The notes under the pieces: generated by a model | Told to the model about the DNA's origin: nothing | The model's input: only the letters and a program-made list of their open reading frames with translations | Databases searched by the model: none | Assembly (NCBI GenBank): GCA_001179505.1 | Contig: CDMY01000718.1 | Location: 62,001-126,000 of the forward strand | Reading direction: 5' to 3' | From: Vitrella brassicaformis CCMP3155 | Taxonomy: Eukaryota; Protista; Chromerida | DNA length: 64,000 nucleotides | Program-made: the position numbers and the translations under genes | Part shown: one piece after another, positions 21,210 through 39,431 of the stretch | Numbering within the stretch: the first letter of the stretch is position 1 | How the letters are laid out: every line of letters starts with the position of its first letter

Positions 21210-22339
21210 ACCAATCCGACTGAGGCCTCGAGCGTTTGCCGTGCCTCGAGAGGAAGCATGCAAATGTCTCCTTTTTCCGTAGGGGTAAGCGGGGTGGTGG
21301 AGTGCGCTTCATGTCATGGTGTTTTTGTATGTCGGTACTGGTCCAGGCAGGACTGTGCAGGTGTACCCAGTGTGAATGGGCAGACACACGTTGTTTGGTG
21401 AATGGCAATTTGGCAGCATACATAGAAAGATCTGCTCCCTAGCTTGCTCCCTAGCTGCCCTGGTCTGCCCCCTAGTAGGCCTGCGTGCTGGACATTTGTG
21501 CGCTGCTTATGTATTGTACGGACGGGCAGAAGGGAAGACGAGGCTGACCGTCACACGCATCATGTCTCCTTGAAGACTCCTTCACACGCATCACGTCTCC
21601 TTTCTGTCAATAATGTTTACTTTCGGCATTCGACGAAAGACCAGGGTTTCTGGAAAAAATGCCAGATCTGTCGGCAGCGGTGGGCGACACATGCGATGTG
21701 ACAGTGCTTTGTCTACCACACCTACCTGCCTCCTGACGTGAGGGCTGGTGATTGTATTGTGCCCCGTGCGTGTGTGTGTGGTGTGGGATGGGCCGCGTCA
21801 GCCGACACACAGCGGCAACATTAAGACATCCCGCCAGCCAGCTTTAAAGCTGCGTACTGTGCTGTCTTCCGGTGTGCGCTCGGCAGACAGCCCAGCGACA
21901 CCCACACACAGACACACACCAGAATGGCAGCGATAGGCAGCACTTCAGCACCACCAACACACACTCACAGCCCCGATGATGGCACGAAGTGTCTCTTTTC
22001 CCTCTCCGTCCCTCTCCAATTTGCTCAAGCAGTTGCCGACCAGAAGGGCGGCGGAATGGGTGAGGCGCACACCTGTCCACCGCAGTCATGGGCAAACACA
22101 GCCGCCAGGCAGACAATGGCATACCAGGCCTCGATCCATCCATCCATCCATCCGTCCACGAAGCGGCCATGCGACAGACACACATTACACCGTCCCTCGC
22201 TCCCTCTCTGTCTACGGGGTGTGAGTGTTACGGCAGGATGCTGCTGTGTCATGTCGTATGCTCTCGACACAGCCTGGAACACACATCAGCACACACACAG
22301 ATTATGTGAAGGCAATGATGCATTGCTCTGCCTTACCCT

Positions 22340-25323
22340 CTAAGAGCGACGCGTTGCAGCCAGCTCAATGCTCCCTGTCCATCGTCTCTCACGTGTGTCG
22401 ATGGTGAAGTTGTCGCCGACCGCTGTGCCGGTGGGAAGGTGCTGTTGAATGGCAGCGCGAGTGGCTCCGCTGCCCCACACATTAAGCGTCAAACACTCCA
22501 GGCCCCGCACGGCATCCACAATGGATGAGATGCCGCCTCAACAGCCCCAGAGGGCTCCAACTCGTCGGGCACTGAGGAAGGAACAACAGACACACAGCAG
22601 CAATGCACACACACAAGAGGAGCCAGCCAGTATCGTTTGTTGCAGAATATTGCCTACATGACAACCCCATGTCTATGCGGCCCATCGATGGGAAGCTGTC
22701 CGACCCCCAGCCGTCCAATGCACCCCCAGTGAGACTGACCGAAGGCCCCCGATGGCCCACATCAACAGTGCCCACTTCCCTCTCCGCGCCCATCGCCCCC
22801 AGCACGGCCCTGCAGTCCTCTGCCCTCACAGCTGAGTTGAACTCCACCAGCTCCACCTCCCTGGGCATCTTCTGGGCCAGAAGCCGACCCGCAGCACCGC
22901 CAAGAGCACTGTTGATTTCCATCGAGCTTCGGGAATAATAGAGCTGTCGGGATCTTGGGAACTGCTGCAGGTGGTTGATGATGGTGGGCTGAGGTGAGGG
23001 GGCGCCGGGAGGGGGGACGAAGCCATGGGCGTTGAAGACACACACCGACTCCACGTTGTCGAATGTGAGTGTCTTGGCGATGTCGATGGCCGCCTGGCTG
23101 GGGCTGTCGACGGGGTGAGTGAGGCTATGCTGGCTGATGGTGTAGCTGATCTGTGCCGCCTGCCGGACCAGTGTCTGGATGGCCATCTTGTAGAAGCGGG
23201 ATGGGTGGGAGGGGAATTTGTCGGCATTGAAGAGGGACAGGTCGAAGCGGTGCTGCTCGGACAGCTCCCAGGCCCCTGGTGTCGACGTCACAGTAATGTT
23301 CGCGTTGGGCGTGCAGCATTCCTTGACGAGGCTGTCGACTGCGAGCAGGGAGTCGATGGCCGTGTGGTCGCCGAGCGGTGGGATCTGCACGTCGAGCTCT
23401 TTGAGCGACTTGCGGCAGCCACGAGATGTGAGCACATCCTACAAGACAAAAAACACAAAGACGTGACGAGCGTATCCACAGGATCGTGTGCGGCCTCTCT
23501 TGTGTGTGATGGCTGCCTACCTTGAGCTGCTCAACTCCCCCCTGGTACTCCTCGTGTGTCTGTCCATCCCGATGCTCAATCAGCCCGATACTCTGCAGCT
23601 GACTCAGCGGCCCCTGCTGCCCCTTTTCAGCCTTGGGGATGTGCTCGAACAGACTGGCCCACTGCTCACCCACCAGATAGCCGCCCACGCGCTGCAGACA
23701 CCGTGACGAGCTAATGAAGCTGCCCAACTCATCCGGCCCCCACCCTGTCTGCTCCACTGTCTCGAGTGACGGCATGCGCCAGCCTCTGTTGGCCAGCTCA
23801 CCGTGCTGGCGGACGGCTCCTGCGACGGCCTTGAGTGAGGGGAGGGTGGGGGGCTCGGTGAGGCGAGGAGGGAGAGGGGGACGCTGCCGCCTCAGCTGAC
23901 GGCCCTCCGCCGCACTCATCCGCACCTCTTCGAATGCGATGGTCTCCAGCCGACTGGCCGACGGTCGCACCTCGGAGGGCCTCTGGGTGGCGGGGGCATC
24001 TCCCTGCGTGTCGGGATGGTCGGTGTCGGGAGGCGGCTGAGTGGGGGCGGGCGGGGCGGCCGTGGTCTCAATGATGGTCACCAGCACGTCACCGCACCAC
24101 ATGGGGTGATGCTCAGGGCGGTACTGGCGAGGGTGGCAGAGGGTGATATGGGTGAGGCCGGTGAGCCGTGCTGCCATTCGCTTGACGAGGTCGAGAGGGA
24201 TCTTCTGCCAAAAGGTGCGGCCCTCGGTCGGCGATCGCCAGCAGTGCTCGTCGCCCTTGGCGCAGTCCATGAAGAGTCGTGTGTGGCTGGGGGCCGCCTT
24301 TGCCCACATCTGCCTGGTGCTCTTGGCCAGCCGCTGGGAGAGGGGGACGAGCACATGAAGGGGCAGACACTCCATCACCAACGAACAAATCTGCACAACA
24401 CACACAGAGGCAGGGATGGGTGTGTCTGTATGTCCGTCATTCACTGCAGATCCCCTCTGGCTGGTCTCACCGTTTCTATGCGCTGCTGCTGCTCTCCGTC
24501 GCCCGCCGCTGCACCGTCCTCTACAACACTAGCACCACCACTACCAGCACCAGCCGGGCTGTCAACCACACGCGCGCGCTTGTTGCCATCACCAACACAC
24601 ACCTGGACAGACAGACGCAGCCCTGGTCCACGTGTGTCAGTGTGTCTGTCTGTGTCTGTGTGTTCGTACGGCTTTGGAGTGCTGCCCTTCTCTGTTGGTC
24701 TCGCCCGAGCTCACAGCGCCGCCCACGCGATGGATGCACCGAAACAACCTCCCGTCGCCATCAGAGCCCTGACCACACACACACCAAGCTCTCCTCTAGA
24801 TGTGTGTCTGATGGGTGTGCGTACCTGTTGCTGATGCGGTGGTGTGTGGGTCTGATTGTGCGGGACGACCTTCTGGAACGGCTCCCGCACCCCGTTGACC
24901 GCCTCCACCGCCCTCAGGTACACCACCGTCCCTCCCTCAGTCGGCTGCACGAGATACACCTCGGCCAGCGCCATGCCCCTCTTCTGGACAGTCGACACCA
25001 TCCACAGCCGAGTGCCCTCCTCGTAACTCTGAGGGCCACGGCGGGACGCCAGCTGCACAACACACAGACAGAGGCAACGGAGGAATGAGTGAGTCTGTCA
25101 GTTAGTCGCTGCAGATCCCCCCTTGGTCGGCCTCACCTCTTTAGTGCGCTCTTGGACTTCTTCATCGCTGGCCGCTACACCATCCTCCACACCACTACCA
25201 GCACCAGCAGCAGCAGCCGAAGCACCCCTCTGCCGGTGAGAAACAAGCAGCAACGGGCAATAGGACAATCATCACTCCGCTGCAGCCGACTTGCGTCACC
25301 TTCGCGGTTTCCCTCTCAGACAT
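22340..25323 (-). CDS. Lineage-expanded family protein (copy 1): N-terminal beta-rich module, F-box-like segment, divergent repeat region; last exon frameshifted relative to copy 2
   Basis: Long ORFs 23125-24444 and 22482-23435 are closely similar in protein and DNA to 37956-38756 and 36900-37952 (shared MLTSRGCRKSLKEL, QPTIINHLQQF, ANRGWRMPSLETVEQTGWGPDELGSFISSSRCLQRVGG). The F-box-like call for ICSLVMECLPLHVLVPL is inference. Confidence 0.7.
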
Positions 25324-26015
25324 GATCTCTCTCTGTGCGATGAATGGCTAAGTCGTCTGGACCATCTCGACTCGACAGCTGCCGCCCACCTGCAGCACAC
25401 ACGCCATCCGTCAAGCCATGAATCGCGCGTGTGTGCGTGTCCATGAAGGGTCATCCATCCATCCATCGCCATGGCTTACCGGCGAGAGGCTCTCTGGTGA
25501 GGCTGCTGATCGAAATGCGCTAACCACAGCACTCACGCTGCTCACGTGAGCCCAACCAAGGTGTAGAAGGGCGCTACTTCCTCCCTCTCAACGCGAGCTG
25601 TAGCGATAGCTGGCGATCCATCACAGGACTGCCGCAGCTGGATGGATGGATACGGTGCCGCCCAGCTCATGTGTGCTTGTTGTGCCGCTGTGTCTGCTGT
25701 GTTGCTGCAGATCTCTTCATTCATCTCACCACAAGCCAAGATCTCGGTGGACATGGCTCTGGTGCTGACAAGGCAAGTGCCCGACGATCCACTGACGCTC
25801 GGGAGGAGAGAGGGGAGGGAGGGAAAGGGGCGGAGCGGAAATTCCATTACCCGTTCTGTCGTGTGTTTCAGGTGCGGGAGCCTCGTTTGGTCTCGTCTCC
25901 ACGACAAAACGTCAGCCAGGAAAGTCCGACGACACACACACGACACGACAGGAGCGAAAGCAGCCAAGTGCAGGAAGGTTTTCGTTGTTTCGCCGAGCGT
26001 TTCCTCACAAGGGAG

Positions 26016-29000
26016 ATGGCGCTTGAAGAGAGCACAATTGCGTCAGACACGGAGGTGCCGTCGAAGTCCCGCCTATGTCAAGATCTGCGGCTCACGGAGG
26101 CGGAGGAGTCGCTGTTCGAGCTGCTGCTGAATGTGGTCAGGGACAAGGATCTTGACACCACGCTGCGTGTGGCGGGCGGCTGGGTACGGGACAAGCTGCT
26201 GCACTTGGGGGACACCGCCTCGCACGACATCGACATTTCTGTGGAGGGAATGCTGGGGCGCCAGTTCGCCGAGCACCTCAATGAGTGAGTGAGCGAGGGA
26301 GTAGTGGACGCACTCCTGGAAGGGCCGCCGTCAGTGTGTGTGTGTGTGTGTGTGTGTACACATGCAGCTGGTTGAAGACCCGTGGGCTCCCGCCCCGCAA
26401 GATAGGCGTGATGGCGGGGAACCCCGAGTCGAATAAGCCTGAGAGGGCGACGCTCAGGCTGAAGGGTGTTCAGGTGGATTTCGTCAACCTGAGGACCGAC
26501 TTCGGCACGGAGGACTCGGGGATGCCCTCGGTTTGCCAGACAGGCAAACCTGGAGGAGCTTCTGTCGCCTGTGTGGTCGACGCCTATCCTCGAGACCTGA
26601 CGATCAATGCCCTCTTCTACAACCTGCACGACAAGAAAGTGGAAGACTTCACCGGTCGGTCTGTGAAAAGAGTGACGGACAGAGAGACAGGCCGCTGACT
26701 GATCCACGCTGCGCTGTGCTGCGTTGTACTGCAGGTCGTGGTATCGAGGATCTGAGAGATGGTGTCCTGCGAACACCACTGGACCCCGCCAAAGCGCTGC
26801 TCGAAAACCCCCTGTGCGTGCTCAGGACCATCAGGTGAACGCACAGACATCTGATGGCTGCCGCATCTGAGTCACCCGGCACATGTCATATGTGCTTTGA
26901 TCGGGCTTTGCAGATTTGCGTCTCGTTTCGGTTTTCGCATCTCGCGTGAGCTCGAGACAGCCTGCCGCGATGCGGGGGTACACCAAGCGCTCGCAGACAA
27001 GGTAAGGTGGTGACGAACTGCACACACAGGCATATCACATCACACATGACTGATGGCGGGCACACGCTGTCTGTCTGCAGGTCTCCCGGGAGCGCATAGG
27101 TGCCGAGCTGGACAAGATGATGAGCTGCAGCGACCCTGTTCAGTGTCCCTGGCAGCTGCTCACCTCCTTCGGGCTGGCCCCCGTCCACTTCTTGCAGCCA
27201 GACAGGATACAGTGGAGCCCCGAGCTGCTCGACCGCTACGTGAGGTCCTCAAAGTCGCCCAACCAGATGTGTGTTGACGGGGTCCTCAGCGATGGCCTGA
27301 TGACCGTCAAGAATCTGCACAGTGTGATGAAACAGTATGTCATCAACGACGCACACTCGACGTACTTCCGGGCACAGAAAGGGGGATTGTGTTGTGTGTG
27401 TGTGTGGGTTTGTAGGTTTGTTGAGCAGTGGGAGCCTGATGAGAAGAAATTGATGAGCTACGCGGCATTCCACGCGCCCCTCGCCGGTCCGAACACACAC
27501 AGAGACTCATTGACTCACGTGAAGGCACACACATCTGGAACGAACGCACTGCTTCATCTGGACCAGGTCTCTCTCTCTGTGTGTGTGTCTGATTACTTAC
27601 CGTTTGTGTGCGTGTGCAGGTCTGCATTATAAGGTTGACAAAGGCAGACCCGCGCCCCTTATCAGCCACCTTCTGGGCAGCCGTCTCAAGCTGCCAAGAC
27701 AGGTCGCACAACGGTGAGAGGCTGAGCAGACCACGACAGACCGAGCAACACACAGCACCTCCAGAGTACCCTCCAACTGCTTCCTTTCTTGTTGTGTATT
27801 CAGCGTGGCTCTCATCTTGTCGACAGCTCTCGAGTTCCAGCGACTCGTCGGGGAGCGGGCCGAGGGAGCCTGCCCGCCGCCTCCAAAGACCGACGCAGCC
27901 GCCCGATCTTCTGCTGCATCTCAGCGGTCGCAGTACGGCCGAGTGGATCTGGGCCTCATAGTCAGAAGAGCGGGGCAGCTGTGGAAGGTACGCACATACA
28001 CACACACACAGAGCAAGCAAGCAGCACTCGCGCTACCGACCTCTTGTGTGTATTGTGTGTCCCCAGGCATCCCTGGCGGTGGCAATGGCCGGGGCCATCG
28101 GCAAAACGCCCCTCGAGTCAGCCCAGCACCTGATGTCCGGCTACAGGGCCGTTGAGGAGGCCGTCGATGACTTCGGCCTCATCGGTGTGTGGCTGCGAGA
28201 TCCGCCTCTGGGCGGGAAGGCGGTCAAGGATGTTCTGCCTTGTCTGCCGACGGGGCCCGAGCTCAACGAGATAATGAAGGAGGTAATGGACTCGCAGGTG
28301 GTGTGGATGCTGGCGCACCCTGACGGCACGGCCGATGAGTGCAGCGAGTTCATCAAAAGCGAATTCGGTCGGTTCTGTGGCGTATCACGCGCCGAGAGCC
28401 TCACGTCCTTGAGATACTACCGCTACGTCAGAGATGAGAGCCCCGATGATTCCTCACTCTATGGCGAGATCAGCCAAAGCGGAGAGTTCAGCAGCGAAGA
28501 GATGTTCGGCCCTGTGGTGGTGTCGTTTGATATCGACGGCACCCTGGCGAAGATCGAGAAGCGACTGGCGCTCAGACGGGTGCGTCTCTGGACACACACG
28601 ACAGGACAGAGGGAACACGGGACGTCCTGTTGTGCTGCCTGTGTTGTGTTGTCACTGTCACTGTGTGTGCGGTCAGGTCCACCGAAGCCAGAAGGATTGG
28701 GACGTGATACTTAGTGGCGACAACTACTACCTCGATGAGGTCAGTCAGTGACTCGTGGGCACACGAGACGCTCCATTCGCATGATACACATGCCTGCCTG
28801 CCTTCTGTGCTGTCTGTCATCTTTCGCTGCGGTGCCGCGTCATCGACACGACAGCCGATTCCTGAAGCCCGTGGTACGAGCAGACTGGCTAATGATCGAT
28901 GCACCCACAGCTGAGTCTGCTGCTGCGTTCAGCTTTCCTGCAACAGCTCGTCCAGCTGACCAGACACCATCCCACTGCCCCCTCCCCACCGGCCGACGGC

Positions 29001-29658
29001 GACCCTCCCTCGTCGCCCATCACCATTGTCTATCTATCGGGCCGTCGAGCGGGCACAGAGGTGCAGACCTCACAATGGCTGGCGGCCCACGGCTTCCCAC
29101 ATGGCGTGATATTCCACCGCCCCAAGGGCGTCAAGGGGGGTCTGTTCAAGGAGCGTGTCTTGAGGTGCCTCCACCAGCCGCCAATGAGGCACGTCATCGC
29201 TCATGTGGGCGACCGGCCGATGGAGGATGCTCTGGCCGCTGTCAAGACAGGTCGGTGCACATACACACACACACACACGGACGGAGGCAGACAGCTGGAT
29301 GTGATATGTGGCGGCTTCTGTTGCGTGCGCGGCAGGGGTGCGGCCCGTCTTGATTGCACCGAACGAGTGGACGGGCAGGGCCCATTCGGCGTCTCAGGAG
29401 TGCAATCGGCCGGCTGGATGGGTGAAGAGATCGACGCTCGAGAGCATCGTGGTGGCGCTGCTGGACGACGAGAGCCGTGAGGGCAAGCAGCCGTCGAGGA
29501 GCTCGCGGGAGGTGGCCGAGGGGCGCTCTTTGCTGCGCGAGTCGCCTTACTGGTCGAGTGGTTCGTGTGCTGACTTCTTCGCCCTCAATATGGCAGCGGA
29601 CTTCTGGGCACATATCAACACAGAGAGAGCGGGGGTGGGTCGTGCGAGTGAGGAGTGA
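26016..29658 (+). CDS. Class II (plant/fungal-type) CCA-adding tRNA nucleotidyltransferase-like protein fused to a C-terminal HAD-family 3'-phosphatase (T4 Pnkp-like)
   Basis: NTase motifs LRVAGGWVRDKLL, HDIDI, DFVNLR, RDLTINALFYN, RTPLDP, FASRF and VSRERIGAELDKM, plus the tail WMLAHPDGT. The same exon (ORF 28046-28714) continues into HAD motif I FDIDGTLAK. Later in-phase exons give YLSGR (II), FKERV (III) and GDRPMED (IV). A 5' extension upstream of 26016 is possible. Confidence 0.85.
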
Positions 29659-29834
29659 CCAGGGCGGGAATCATTGTGTGTTTTTCAAGTGATGGGTTCA
29701 GTACATTGTCGATGTGTGAATAAATTGTTTGTCCAATGCACTGGGGATGTGTTCGTTGAGCGGTTACAGCTGGACACAGCTAGACACAATACAGTACACG
29801 CACAGTGAATGTCCATTGCTCAGCCAACGCTGGG

Positions 29835-31762
29835 ATGGCGGCTGCACGTCCTTCTGATCATCAGACCCTGCAGCAGCAGAGCTCGAGAGGCATGGTCGTG
29901 TTGGGGATGGACCAAGAAGGTCGACAAACGGATGACGGCGAGCACCGCACAAACGACAAACCAACTCATCCGTATTTGCTGATATCGCCACTGTGGCAAT
30001 CTACAGGTCCGTTAACCGTGCTCAATGCCTTATCCTTTGGCAGTTCCTCCTCCTTCACGACGCGAGCTTTGGTCGACATGAATTTCAAGCTCGCACACAA
30101 TCTAAGGTCCAAGGCAGGTCAAAGCAGGGCAACACGACGCACGGGGCATGGAAGTGTGACATCTGGCGCGATCTGCATTGGAATGGCGTCAGCAGGCAGC
30201 CGGACCATCGCCGATGCGCTCCGCGCGTGTGATCCCCGCGACATTCTGGACATGTCATGCCGTGAGCCCGTCACCAACTCGCCCTTCGGCCACACGGCAG
30301 TGACCAAGCTGGAGATCTTCAGGCGGATACGGCAGCTGGGCATGAGGAATGTGGCAGCTCTTGCCTGGTATGACGACTACTGCCCGGTGGAGGACCAGTT
30401 CCTGCAGCTGCTGATGGCCGAGGAGCCTCGGCTAAATGGAATCGTCGTCATGTTCCCGGCAGGTCTGAGCACATGAGTGCATTCAAGCATTGTGGTGATT
30501 GAACCTTCTCATTACGTCTTGTGGTGTCTGTCTGCAGGTGACCAGTCGGCGCTCGCGAAGCTGCGGGCATCGTCCATCCCCAATGTGTTCATCGACGTCT
30601 ACCTCTCACCCCGCAATCAGCGCGGCGCTGTCGACGCATCAGTCAGCCCCCAGACCCACATCCAGCAGACCCTTCAGTCGATTCTGGAGCACTTCAAGGC
30701 CATCAACAGGCAGCGGCAGCCACCTCCAATCAACCTTGATGGGAAGTATCGCTACCACATCTACGTCAATCTGGTGGACCTGTGCGATGCGCCCATTGGG
30801 ACGCCGGCCACTGATGCCACCATCGCCTACCTCAAGGGAGCTAGTGCCGTGGTGCCCAACGTGACGCACATCTGTTTTGAGGAGTTCAGGGGCAATTGGA
30901 CGCACGAGAAATACGGAGAGGTGGCGGCCCTACTCAGGTGAAGTGTCAGCCGAAGCATTGCCAGCACGGCTGATGGATTGCAAATGCCTCTTGTCTGTTT
31001 TCATTCAGGTCGCATTTCCCTCGCGGCCGCTACAAGCTGCTCGTCCATGCCCACGCTGGCGCAGCGGCCAACGACACGGGCGCGTCCACTCTGGAAGCTG
31101 TCAAGCACGGGGCGGACGGCATCTGGTCGGCCTTTCTGCCCGACGCAGCCCAGATTGGCCACAACTCCTCCATTCGTTTCCTCAGCGACCTCTGGCACCA
31201 CGACCATCCCACTGTGGATCACTACTACTCATTCGACAAAGTGAGCAGACACACACGGGGAAAGATCGCTGAAGAATTTGGTGTGTCTTCGGTGCTTCAG
31301 ATGATCCCATTGGCGCGCGAGCTGCATGAGCTGAGCTTCCCGGGCGTCGCCATCGATCCGCTGTGCCCCATCTATGGCGTTCACGCCTCTGCCTGGGTCA
31401 ATCAGGCCTTCAGACACCAAGACAACTCGCCACACGCATTCCCGGCTCAACTGGTGAGCTACTTGCACGTTGATAAAATAGCAACCAACCCGATTGTGCC
31501 TGTCTGGTATGAATTCTCGTGTCAGTTTGGCGGTTGTAATCGTTCGCGCATCGCTCCAATGATCTCCGACGACGCCACGATTGCCGGGCGAGTGGGCGAG
31601 GTGGTCGGCAGGTCCTTTACCCGGCTGCCGCTCGAGAGGCAGCACGAGGTCGCTCGACGGATGCGTCGATGTATGCACGCCGTGCTGGCCGATGGGCGAC
31701 GATATGACTTTGATAATCCCGCTATCGTCAAGTGGATCTACCGACACGTATGTGACGACTGA
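29835..31762 (+). CDS. DRE-TIM metallolyase (HMGL-like/pyruvate carboxyltransferase fold) of an uncharacterised family
   Basis: ILDMSCREP...GHTAVTKLEIFRRIRQLGMRNV resembles the ILDxxLRxG...EEKLEIA..L..LG start of DRE-TIM barrels. LLVHAHAG...TLEAVKHGADGIWSAF carries the HxH metal motif and the AV.AGA.. strand. GT-AG introns are in phase. Confidence 0.65.
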
Positions 31763-35996: not shown

Positions 35997-36899
35997 GAGA
36001 CGTACGTGGGTTTGGCTTGCGTAGTGTGAGATCAGTCGTAGCCTCGCAGACGGATGACATTTTTACCAGCGAACGGCTGCCTATGCGCCTTCGTGCAGTG
36101 CCTCCGTTTTTTGGCACACGGAGATTTCTGTGTGTTGTGGGACTTGGCGTGCAGTGCGTGTGGTATGGTGTGCGAAGGTCAACACAGACCTTCCATCGAG
36201 CGGCTCACATTTGGCAGCCGACGTGTGTGTTTATGAGTGTTTGCGAGTTTATCCACAGTGCACTGGGGATGCATGAATGTGTTGTCGCGGATGCACTGTG
36301 TCGTGTTGGTCATTAGGGCTGTTGGAAGCTAGGGACGCCGGGTGAGCAGATGGCACACGTGAGCTGATGTGAGGGATGCATTAACGGACGCTGCATGCTT
36401 GTCGGATCGTAGCAAGACGTTTTTCATTGCAATGAAGAGAACGTGACTGGTCTGTGTGTCTGTCTGTCATCTCTGATCGTGGACCAAGGCAGGCCATGTA
36501 CACGAAAGGGGCGGCAGTAAGTGAACTCGTGCCGTCCATCTAATCAATCACATCCATCCAATTTGCTGTGCATGCAATGAGCTGCAACAAGCTGCAAGCT
36601 ATCTCTCTGCTGGCTGGCTGGGCCGCTGCCCGCGGCGGATATATGCCACATATGCACATTGAGCCCACGAGCCGAGTGTATTGGTGTATGGTGTCTTTGG
36701 GGGTGTGGTGTGTTGGAGGGGCCGCATCAGTCGACACATACTGCAACATCCATCCATCCATCCATCTCGTTGCCTCGACAGACAGCCTGACCCGGCCAAC
36801 GGCCACACACAGCCTGACCCAACGGCCACACACAGACACCAACACACACCATGAGGCCGGACGGTGGATGCATTGCTCTGCCTTTTCCCGCCTCACACT

Positions 36900-39431
36900 C
36901 TAGGAACGACGCGTTGCAGTTACTTCAACTGAACCCCATTGACTGCGTGTGCCGATGGTGAAGTTGTCACTGACCTCTGTCCGAACGGCCTCACGAACGG
37001 CGTCACGAACGGCCTCGCTGCCATGCACGGTCAGCGTCAAACTCCGCAGGCTCCGCACGCCGCCGACGATGGACGAGATGCCGCCGCGGATGAGCTCGGC
37101 AGCAGCAGAGGCCCCCAAGCCGTCGGGCACTGAGGAATAAGACAGACACGGGAGCAATGCACGCACACAAGATGATCCGCCAGAATCGTCTGTTCCGGTG
37201 CGGTGCATACCTGACAAATGCATGCCTATGCGGCCAATCGACGGGAAGCCGTCCGACCTCCAGCCGTCCAATGCACCCCCAGTGAGACTGACCTCATCAA
37301 CATTGACACTGCCCACCTCCGTCCCCGCCCCGAGGCCCTCCAACACGCCTATCATGCCCCCTGAACTCACACCTCGGCCAATCCACACCCACTCGACCAT
37401 CCTGGGCATCTTCTCTGCCAGCAGCCGACCTGAAGAATCGCCAAGAGCACTGCAGATGTACAGCTCAGTGCCCGTTAGGAACTGCTGCAGGTGGTTGATG
37501 ATGGTGGGCTGCGGTGAAGGGGCGCCGGGAGGGGGGTCGAAACCATGGGCGTTGCGGACAATCACGCGCTCGGCCTTGTCGAATGTGAGTGTCTTGGCGA
37601 TGTCGATGGCCGCCTGGCTGGGGCTGTCGACGGGGTGGGTGAGGTCATGCTGGCTGATGACGTAGTTGATCTGTGTGGCCTCCCTTGCGGCCGCCTGGAT
37701 GGCCATCATGAAGAAGGGGGAGGGGTGGGAGGGGATCGCGTCGCTGTAGAAGAGGGACAGGTCGAAGCGGTGCAGCCTCGAAATCACGGGGTGCGGTGTC
37801 GACGTCACAGTGATGCGCGCGTCGGGCGTGCAGCATTCCTTGACGAGGCTGTCGACTGCGACCAGGGAGTCGATGGCCGTGTGGCCGTAGAGCGGTGGGA
37901 TCTGCACGTGCAGCTCTTTCAGCGACTTGCGGCAGCCGCGAGATGTGAGCACATCCTACAAGACAAACAACACAAGACATGAAATGCGTACCCACAGGCA
38001 CGTGTGCGGCCTCTCTTGTGTGTGATGGCTGCCTACCTTTAGCCGCTCAACTCCCGCCTGGTACCGCTGGTGTGTCTGTCCATCCCGATGCTCAATCATT
38101 CCGATGCTCTGCAGCTGCCGGAGCGGCCCCGGCTGCCCAGCCGCTGCCTTGGGGATGTGCTCGAGCACCGCCGCCCACTGCTTACCCCACAGCTGGCCGC
38201 CCACGCGCTGCAGACACCGTGACGAGCTAATGAAGCTGCCCAGCTCATCCGGCCCCCACCCTGTCTGCTCCACTGTTTCGAGTGACGGCATCCGCCACCC
38301 TCTGTTGGCCAGGTCAGAGTGATGGCGGACGGCTCCTGTGACGGCCTTGAGTGAGGGGAGGGTGGGGGGCTCGGTGAGTAGAGGAGGGGTAGGGGGACGC
38401 TGTCGCTTCTCTGCCCTGCGGCTGATGCTGGTGTTGCCGGTGCTGCCGGTGCTGAAGGTGATGGTCTCGAGCGAACCCTCCGACTTGTGTTGTCGCCCAG
38501 CCGCATGACCCTCCACAACGGCCATCATGTTGTCCAGGCACGACACATCACCCTTGAGTGTGATCAGATTGACGAGCCGTCTGCCTAACTTCAATGCCGC
38601 CTCGCTTGCCGTCTGGCTCCAAAATCGACGGTCTGCATCGGTGGCGGCGTCTATGGTGGCGTGTGTGTGCTGGTGGACGGCTCCGTTGCGGATGGGGGAG
38701 CGGTGCGGGAAGATGGCCGACAGCTCGCGGGGGGTCATGAAGCCAAAGAGTGACACCTGGTGGTCATCGGCAAAACCATCAGGGGCCTGAAAGAGGGAGA
38801 GGGGGGCATAAAAGTGGGCGGGCTGGGCTGCGTGTAGTGCTCACCTTGTGTGTCTTTGGTTTCTTGTTTGGAGGCGTCGTGGTGTCACGTGAGGGGGGCA
38901 GACCGGTGAGGAAGTCGGGGAACCAGCCCCAGGAGTCGGGTCGGTTGTCGAGGGTGTCGTCGGGCCGGACGATCAGGCCAAGTGTCCATCCCGAGCTGTG
39001 CCGCTCCTGGATGCGGACCCTCGTTCCCTCGGCCAGCGAGAGCTGCTGCCCACCACCGCCCTCGGCGGTCCACTCCTCGGCTATCGTCACCTCCACTGCC
39101 GGCACCAGCACCTCAAACCTCTCACGGCAACCGGCAACCTCCGTCATGTGCACCTTGGTCCCTCTACTGGTCTCCTCCGGTCTGCGATCGACGACAGCCG
39201 TCACCCACTTGTGCTTGCCCTCCCTCTTGGTCTTCGACACCATCAGCACACGAGTGCCCTCTCGGTAGCGAGTGAAGGGTGGCATCAGCTGGTGGGTGAG
39301 ACGATCAAGCAAACGAGTCGTCACGTACCCACAACACACCGTGATGATGCATGTGCACTCGTGCCTTATTGGCTCACCGGCAGATGCGGCAGATTGAAGT
39401 GGCAGGCAGATGCTGACGAGACCGCCGCCAT
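36900..39431 (-). CDS. Lineage-expanded family protein (copy 2): beta-rich module, SH3 domain, F-box-like segment, divergent repeat region
   Basis: Paralog of 22340-25323. The exon at about 38850-39290 encodes EEWTAEGGGGQQLSLAEGTRVRIQERHSSGWTLG...WGWFPDF, an SH3 pattern (LSL..G..V.I.E..SGW..G...GWFP). ATG at 39431 in gccATGg context. Confidence 0.75.

Follow-up and report, generated by a model that had tools for sequence, protein, structure and literature searches.

The stretch analysed here, called the window, comprises 64,000 nucleotides of Vitrella brassicaformis CCMP3155 (contig CDMY01000718.1, positions 62,001 to 126,000 of the forward strand). Positions 26016-29658 of its plus strand carry a gene in which a paralog of the tRNA nucleotidyltransferases that add CCA (CCA enzymes) is followed, in the same frame, by a C-terminal HAD phosphatase domain. 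The fused gene is real and expressed, and has so far been seen only in Vitrella. Three-frame translation, hand-placed junctions and RNA contigs gave a model of 13 exons with GT-AG introns and 860 codons, in which the open reading frame (ORF) is complete from the ATG at 26016 to the stop codon at 29656-29658 (Table 1).

Gene model and transcript evidence

Contigs from the RNA-type public runs X1 and X6 were aligned to 25800-29900, and the DNA-like runs X2 and X5 served as contrast. Nine coding introns were confirmed by contig joints in X1/X6 (26654/26735, 26834/26914, 27001/27081, 27334/27416, 27486/27620, 27713/27804, 28579/28677, 28739/28855 and 28873/28933), and no spliced joint of the fusion gene was found in X2 or X5. 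The JGI transcript contig L011 was 100% identical to 29333-29821; its ORF, P0183, represents the spliced exons 12-13 of the window gene, and it confirmed the joint 29250/29336, the stop codon and a 3' untranslated region (UTR) of more than 160 nucleotides. A first-pass annotation, made by a model from the letters alone, had proposed the fusion. One hand-placed junction was corrected by RNA: acceptor 28911 for the exon carrying LSGRR was rejected, the RNA contigs showing instead a micro-exon of 19 nucleotides, revealed by X1 joints, and acceptor 28933. The pieces LSGRRAGT, TSQWL, HRPKG, FKERV and GDRPMED, which that annotation had read as in phase, all lie in exon 12 and in one frame after GT-AG splicing.

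Table 1. Exons of the fusion gene and associated transcript features (window coordinates)
Feature	Position	Strand	Content and evidence
Exon 1	26016..26284	+	Start ATG; GGWVRD (aa 54-59); D71/D73 at 26226-26234; Pfam PolyA_pol; X6 contig 25870-26284
Exon 2	26368..26654	+	Remainder of PolyA_pol head; SNKPER, SGMP, 7-aa insert, PRD; Pfam PolyA_pol E 4.9e-8; joint 26654/26735 in X6
Exon 3	26735..26834	+	Motif C; degenerate motif D ENPLC at 26803-26817; flanking joints in X6
Exon 4	26914..27001	+	Neck
Exon 5	27081..27334	+	Motif E (SRERIGAELDK); PolyA_pol_RNAbd region, PF12627; joint 27334/27416 in X1, X6
Exon 6	27416..27486	+	Body
Exon 7	27620..27713	+	Body
Exon 8	27804..27987	+	Body, low-complexity insert
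Exon 9, fusion exon	28067..28579	+	CCA tail aa 457-556, linker, HAD motif I; open frame, unspliced RNA cover
Exon 10	28677..28739	+	HAD cap-region insert with invariant W (DWDVILSGDNYYLDE); joints 28579/28677 (X1, X6), 28739/28855 (X1); alignment A1
Exon 11, micro-exon	28855..28873	+	PIPEAR; X1 joints; PIPEAR also in annotated P0072 and family consensus
Exon 12	28933..29250	+	Motif II SGRR 29037-29048; motif III K720 29148-29150; motif IV GDRPMED 29208-29228; PHROG matches; joint 29250/29336 in L011
Exon 13	29336..29658	+	Last HAD strand VRPVLIAPNEW; poorly conserved tail; stop 29656-29658; matches P0183
5'-leader intron, GC-AG	25773..25871	+	X6 loose end joins ...GCTGACAAG to 25872
AATAAA-like signal, 3' UTR	29719..29724	+	RNA contigs reach 29756-29821

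The two halves meet in exon 9, which encodes amino acids (aa) 450-620 in the order CCA tail domain, linker of about 45 aa and HAD motif I. The tail domain reads …VVWMLAHPDGTADEC… and contains WMLAHPDGT; motif I reads VVVSFDIDGTLAKIEKR, with its F at 28526, where FDIDGTLAKIEKR begins. The DIDGT of this motif (D604-T608) occupies 28529-28543, and R615 (28562-28564) is spaced from the nucleophile as is R176 in T4 Pnkp. The proposal that WMLAHPDGT and motif I share one uninterrupted exon was upheld, as they stand in one frame of one exon with no stop codon between WMLAHPDGT and FDIDGT. RNA contigs cover 28133-28578 of the exon without a break (28133-28264, 28235-28524, 28250-28498 and at least 28515-28578, the last joined to 28677), and the cover of 28250-28498 has zero mismatches, indicating that the window copy itself is transcribed. 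Transcripts ending or splicing within 28380-28520, the interval singled out by the first-pass annotation, were not seen: the RNA contigs are unspliced there, and no splice joint was found anywhere inside exon 9 in X1/X6. A gene-model artefact, with two genes merged into one, was rejected, the junction sitting within a single RNA-covered exon.

The tail domain (W..HP.GT..EC; model aa 457-556, window 28088-28387; also in P0005 and P0009), to which Pfam gave no name, also occurs as stand-alone proteins of 105-130 aa and is repeated at least six times in tandem in the 586-aa protein P0009.

In the leader (25642-26015), upstream ATGs at 25642, 25669 and 25753 open a signal-peptide-like frame (MCACCAAVSAVLLQISS/FISPQ…), which joins the main ORF only if a GT-AG intron at 25911-26011 is spliced, as in the annotated model of P0072, the sister copy described below. 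This intron is retained in the sole RNA contig seen (25870-26284), leaving an overlapping upstream ORF that ends at 26130. The leader frame could represent an alternative plastid- or ER-targeted isoform. Many introns of the gene carry (GT)n/(CA)n microsatellites near splice sites (26323-26366, 27563-27600, 27983-28025 and 29262-29280); the read alignment passed over these runs as repeats.

Sequence and predicted structure of the two halves

The nucleotidyltransferase half was identified by Pfam, with PolyA_pol and PolyA_pol_RNAbd matches on window exons 1, 2 and 5. PolyA_pol (PF01743) scored 33.8 bits on exon 2 alone and 78 bits (cut-off 23) on P0072, a protein 88% identical to the window model, on which PolyA_pol_RNAbd scored 23 bits. 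The fused protein has the same head-neck-body-tail layout as eukaryotic CCA enzymes of the TRNT1/Cca1 type, including the Vitrella paralogs P0002 and P0001 and Chromera P0013; apart from the fused copies, these enzymes end right after the tail domain and keep (E/D)DPLR, RRD, SKHLET and SRIP. Motif A is kept (GGWVRD and the catalytic DxD, D71-I-D73), as are motifs C and E in the window copy. The templating motif D, EDxxR, reads ENPLC in the window copy and GTPLR in its sister P0072; (E/D)DPLR stands at this place in P0002, P0013, the P0001 locus and each of the 38 reference enzymes. Motif B, RRD, involved in ribose recognition, reads PRD in the window after a 7-aa insert, with RRD kept in P0072, and alignment with the 38 canonical enzymes showed SKHLET replaced by SNKPER and SRIP by SGMP in the window copy.

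These losses were set against 107 positions that are at least 90% conserved in 38 non-chromerid CCA enzymes. The window copy kept 85 of them (22 lost) and P0072 kept 86, compared with 94 in the canonical Vitrella paralog P0002 (13 lost) and 99 in Chromera P0013 (8 lost). With templating motif D, RRD, SKHLET and SRIP lost, faithful CCA addition by the fused protein is doubtful. The templating positions also differ between the two fused copies, which makes a defined new nucleoside triphosphate specificity unlikely. To judge from these residues, the polymerase site would be either inactive or relaxed in specificity.

The HAD half retains all four HAD motifs, with D604, D606, T608, S683, K720, D741 and D746 invariant in A1, an alignment of seven family members. 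Invariant across the seven are DxDxT, an R at +11, a Trp in the insert, Y-x-S-G-R-R-x-x-T, K and G-D-x4-D. Single-exon Pfam and NCBIfam scans gave weak or absent HAD matches, and the domain became clear with full-length P0072. When residues 630-867 of P0072 were used as the PHROGs query, phrog_415 ('polynucleotide kinase') matched the whole domain at E 1.7e-12 and phrog_505, a full-length Pnkp-type profile, at 7.9e-7; the exon pieces of the window itself match both profiles collinearly. The A1 profile, run against PDB sequences, had the T4 Pnkp phosphatase 5uj0 as its top match (E 3.8e-5), with full-length T4 Pnkp (1ltq) at 4.9e-4 and Pnkp1 (4xrp) at 0.077. Matches of the LSGRR exon to phages by tblastn were individually non-significant (E 0.03-10); polynucleotide kinase genes accounted for 15 of the 20 matches listed, which serves as a lead only.

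An AlphaFold2 model of the domain built from A1 had a pLDDT of 80 and a pTM of 0.77. Foldseek ranked 5uj0 first (1.2e-6) and 4xrp second (1.7e-6), followed by AphA (3.5e-6). In VIA-align, 5uj0 again led (Z 16.3, root-mean-square deviation 1.9 Å, 131 of 142 residues), with 4xru at Z 15.8, 1ltq and 4xrp both at 15.7, VSP at 14.1 and Lipin at 12.6. The phrog_415 match, the scores of the family relatives and this superposition on T4 Pnkp put the HAD similarity well beyond what chance would give. Neighbours in the ESM Atlas, by features and shape, were nearly all HAD_PNKP clusters from phages and bacteria, HAD_PNKP making up 97-100% of the shape neighbours. The domain falls in the open, cap-poor branch of HAD enzymes. 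The characterised enzymes of this branch, T4 Pnkp and Pnkp1, act on broken RNA or DNA, from whose ends they take off 3'-phosphates, and Das and Shuman reportedly found in 2013 that T4 Pnkp opens 2',3'-cyclic phosphates as well. Pnkp1 belongs to the bacterial Pnkp1-Rnl-Hen1 RNA repair system.

Compared with T4 Pnkp (5uj0, 1ltq; PF25109) and Pnkp1, the Vitrella HAD has the same fold and DxDxT. We take D165, D167, R176, R213, D254, K258, D277 and D278 to be the key T4 residues defined by mutagenesis in the Shuman laboratory. HMM alignment to 1ltq/5uj0 found equivalents in D604, D606, R615, R685, K720 and D741, so that the +11 Arg (T4 R176), S-G-R (R213), the motif III Lys (K258) and the Asp equivalent to D278 are shared. 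Identity is about 20-24%, however, and the Vitrella domain lacks the fused 5'-kinase, has GDxxxxD in place of DD, does not conserve T4 D254, contains an extra insert of about 10 residues with the invariant Trp as well as a low-complexity loop, and is eukaryotic and fused to a CCA-enzyme paralog. The likeness to T4 Pnkp that the first-pass annotation had recognised therefore stands in part: polynucleotide 3'-phosphatases are the nearest characterised relatives by profile and predicted fold, but HAD_PNKP stays below its cut-off, and little separates them from acid phosphatases and LNS2, which come next. Its pairing of the T4 DDR with GDRPMED as motif IV was likewise only partly right, the family having the GDxxxxD form typical of acid phosphatases. 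On sequence grounds the domain carries what appears to be a catalytically intact motif set in a Pnkp/acid-phosphatase-B/LNS2 neighbourhood, and profile and model together place it nearest to polynucleotide 3'-phosphatases by a modest margin. A polynucleotide substrate is what we infer from this placement.

Sister copy, relatives and selective constraint

An exhaustive HMMER search with exon 9 led to P0001 and P0002 of V. brassicaformis CCMP3155, and a search with P0002 then found P0072, an 867-aa 'unnamed protein product' of V. brassicaformis with the same CCA and HAD architecture including PIPEAR. Its locus, L005 (CDMY01000238.1, 10001-13802), lines up collinearly with the window, 87-90% of nucleotides being identical; P0072 is without 18 nucleotides (TAPSPP) in the HAD loop and ends earlier in the C-terminal tail. 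Variant contigs of 96-97% identity occur within the same RNA run. The genome thus holds two expressed paralogous fused copies. An 898-aa entry in AlphaFold DB (AFDB) was flagged as the window's own protein or a near copy.

In a maximum-likelihood tree of 30 eukaryotic CCA enzymes, the window copy, P0072, P0002 (605 aa; 51% identical to the window copy) and P0001 formed a 100/100 clade with Chromera P0013 outside, and the fused genes therefore arose by lineage-specific duplication. None of the 71 exhaustive-HMMER matches to exon 9 had a HAD after the CCA tail, the tail domain being C-terminal in all. The tail domain and HAD were combined only in the window model and P0072 among 188 fetched proteins, and when long proteins were searched with the HAD region, P0072 and P0182 were the only matches, the latter with an unrelated architecture. 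HAD is absent from the Chromera enzyme and from P0001 and P0002; a HAD downstream of the latter two was sought by tblastn on their loci, L003 and L004, and rejected. No CCA-HAD fusion was found outside Vitrella, and no description of one was found in the literature. The first-pass annotation knew of no such architecture in eukaryotic CCA enzymes. It is indeed found in none of the other eukaryotic CCA enzymes examined, but the public Vitrella proteome already contains P0072, labelled 'Poly A polymerase head domain' and otherwise unnamed. The architecture is present, unnamed, in public annotation and so far restricted to the Vitrella lineage.

The HAD itself belongs to a small eukaryotic and metagenomic family of 35-44% identity, whose members score E 1e-22 to 1e-29. 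P0182 (873 aa, Tara metatranscriptome) has an N-terminal membrane helix and a long low-complexity region before the HAD, and P0184 (293 aa, locus L007 35-916) has a CCCH zinc finger (zf-CCCH, 23.2 bits; cut-off 20.5) before it; P0186, P0187, P0185 and P0188 are further members. By sequence, the N-terminal CCCH finger of P0184 would be an independent link of the HAD family to RNA. HAD_PNKP scored 37.7 bits on P0188, 27.2 on P0185 and 16-23 on the others. On a metagenome contig (L008 2190-3348 / L009 834-1992) adjoining a MIOX gene, P0185, a 172-aa stand-alone HAD, is followed by a second 172-aa ORF, and the pair may be a tandem duplicate.

AFDB offered two further leads. One is a bacterial protein of 356 aa, listed as a 'putative nucleotidyltransferase', whose C-terminal domain appears to be of the Vitrella-HAD type. 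The entry A0A0G4ESP2 (326 aa, 78% identical to the Vitrella HAD) is auto-named 'Swiss Army Knife RNA repair protein HAD domain-containing protein' and, to judge from its sequence, may represent a third paralog that stands alone and from which the fused domain could have come. RNA-repair HAD families including 'Swiss Army Knife' are said to have been defined by Burroughs and Aravind in 2016. The 'Swiss Army Knife' family has been described as stand-alone RNA-end phosphatases (PMC7824862). For the Vitrella family this name (HAD_SAK_1/2) occurs only as that automatic label, and the Pfam scan matched HAD_SAK in one of the seven members only (HAD_SAK_2, E 0.17).

Selection between the two fused copies was estimated by the Nei-Gojobori method as the ratio of nonsynonymous to synonymous substitution rates (dN/dS). 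It was 0.48 for the head, 0.30 for the body, 0.29 for the HAD and about 1.3 for the C-terminal tail after the HAD. Neither copy shows a frame-shifting indel or a broken splice site, and both keep the whole ORF. Selection thus appears to constrain the copies genuinely, if weakly, and most of all in the HAD and the body that binds tRNA. Elsewhere in the window, the gene upstream of the fusion gene (22022-25732; in L005 on the minus strand, 872 aa) has an 80%-identical partial copy at 36867-38388, which indicates local segmental duplication.

Candidate role in 3'-end repair

The best explanation, to which we give about an even chance, is that the CCA-derived module recognises the tRNA acceptor end and the HAD heals the 3' end; sequence and structural model together suggest a protein that repairs tRNA/RNA 3' ends. 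The head, neck, body and tail inherited from the CCA enzyme would still recognise the acceptor end, and a damaged end bearing a 3'-phosphate, possibly a 2',3'-cyclic phosphate, would be presented to the HAD active site, where removal of the 3'-phosphate would restore the 3'-OH. CCA would more probably be rebuilt by the canonical paralogs P0002 and P0001 than by the fused protein, because the fused paralog has lost the C- and A-templating residues, giving a division of labour. By its motifs and modelled fold, the healing step is plausible.

Several observations weigh against this explanation. HAD_PNKP (PF25109) reached 18-19 bits on the Vitrella HAD against a cut-off of 27.6; the first-pass annotation had expected this profile along with PolyA_pol and PolyA_pol_RNAbd, and Pfam found the latter two. 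The top Pfam score was that of LNS2_PITM1-3 (28.5-29.2 bits, cut-off 27.7), with a match that spans only about 40 residues (39-77 of the 124-position profile) and scores 24.8 bits on full-length P0072. Nir2 LNS2 (E 2.5e-4) and class C acid phosphatases (E 2.9e-4) were close seconds to 5uj0 in the A1 search, and Nir2 (Z 14.4) and AphA (Z 13.5) came close behind in VIA-align. The T4-essential D254 and D277 align to Gly, with D746 as a possible substitute. T5 dNMPase clusters occur among the ESM Atlas neighbours, and a mononucleotide substrate is therefore possible. No P-loop kinase domain was found in the fused protein by the Pfam scan of P0072, although many phage members of the Pnkp-type phosphatase family are likewise stand-alone. 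The upstream ATGs of the leader may hamper translation from 26016. Between the fused copies, identity is equal in exons (93.1%) and introns (92.8%), and overall dN/dS is 0.43, a weak constraint for a housekeeping-type enzyme.

It is improbable, in our judgement, that the HAD instead acts on small molecules or lipids, as a nucleotidase of the class B/C acid-phosphatase or T5 dNMPase type or as an LNS2/lipin-like enzyme, in a fusion without any RNA-end role. Class B/C acid phosphatases (AphA, P4) and the LNS2 domains of PITPNM/Nir2 and lipins form a neighbouring HAD branch with a similar motif II context and a GDxxxD motif IV, and these families act on free nucleotides or lipids. Besides the LNS2 score and the T5 dNMPase neighbours, this alternative draws on Acid_phosphat_B (PF03767), which scored 47 bits on P0188 and 39.5 on P0185, in both cases above HAD_PNKP, on the alignment of GDxxxxD and the conserved insert W with class C acid phosphatases, and on the membrane helix of P0182. 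On the Vitrella HAD, Acid_phosphat_B gave 11 bits, below its cut-off of 27. Polynucleotide 3'-phosphatases headed the PDB profile search as well as all structure searches, in which acid phosphatases and LNS2 ranked lower, and the model covers almost the whole cap-less T4 domain. The fusion partners of the family are RNA-related, namely the CCA-enzyme paralog and the CCCH finger, whereas we know of no acid phosphatase or LNS2 family member fused to an RNA enzyme.

Full healing followed by extension, as proposed in the first-pass annotation, is unlikely too. Here the HAD would remove the 3'-phosphate or cyclic phosphate and the same polypeptide would rebuild CCA or add another tail. A CCA-type nucleotidyltransferase and a HAD do share one transcribed, in-frame gene, co-linear fusion is the usual signature of consecutive steps, and GGWVRD and DxD survive together with motifs C and E. 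A precedent exists in bacteria, some of whose CCA enzymes carry an HD phosphohydrolase domain; Yakunin and colleagues reportedly described E. coli Cca with such a domain in 2004, and its C-terminal HD domain has 2',3'-cyclic phosphodiesterase, 2'-nucleotidase and phosphatase activities. Like the Vitrella protein, these are class II tRNA nucleotidyltransferases with a C-terminal phosphohydrolase that could clean tRNA 3' ends, but the Vitrella domain is HAD and not HD, which implies an independent gain, its host is eukaryotic and its templating motif is degenerate. The extending half of the proposal is weakened by the altered motif D, RRD, SKHLET and SRIP, the disagreement of the fused copies at templating positions argues against any defined new specificity, and canonical paralogs are present in the same genome. 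We accordingly give little credence to the most far-reaching form, a one-polypeptide tRNA 3'-end repair enzyme built independently in a eukaryote. In that form the HAD would clear the 3'-phosphate or 2',3'-cyclic phosphate left by tRNA-end nucleases (e.g. after ribosome-associated quality control or toxin attack) and the CCA module would bind and re-extend, possibly in the plastid given the signal-peptide-like optional N-terminus. Such an enzyme, if real, would have arrived by convergence at what bacterial CCA enzymes do with an HD domain and what mammals do by the relay of ELAC1/ANGEL2 and TRNT1.

Least probable by some way is a young duplicate decaying into pseudogenes with no maintained function, for which the equal exon and intron identity, the overall dN/dS and that of the C-terminal tail, the lost pocket residues and the overlapping upstream ORF would speak, but both ORFs are intact over more than 800 codons and 13 exons with in-frame indels and intact splice sites, both copies occur in RNA contigs, and the HAD is constrained with every catalytic residue kept.

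In tRNA 3'-end repair, a phosphoesterase has to heal the end before a CCA enzyme can act on it. Bacteria have the healing activity as an HD domain on the CCA enzyme itself; in animals the two steps fall to different proteins. By sequence, the Vitrella fusion appears to be a new domain architecture and a variant of this known idea of a CCA enzyme plus an end-healing phosphoesterase. Its reach is limited, with only Vitrella and its two paralogs so far and rather weak constraint. If recognition of the acceptor end by the CCA-derived module and healing by the HAD hold true, a eukaryotic CCA-enzyme paralog with a Pnkp-type HAD would be a third, independent solution to tRNA 3'-end repair. With its templating residues lost, the protein would show a CCA enzyme that evolution has turned into a module for recognising tRNA ends, and the fusion opens a way into a small and as yet uncharacterised family of eukaryotic HAD proteins that includes a CCCH-finger member.

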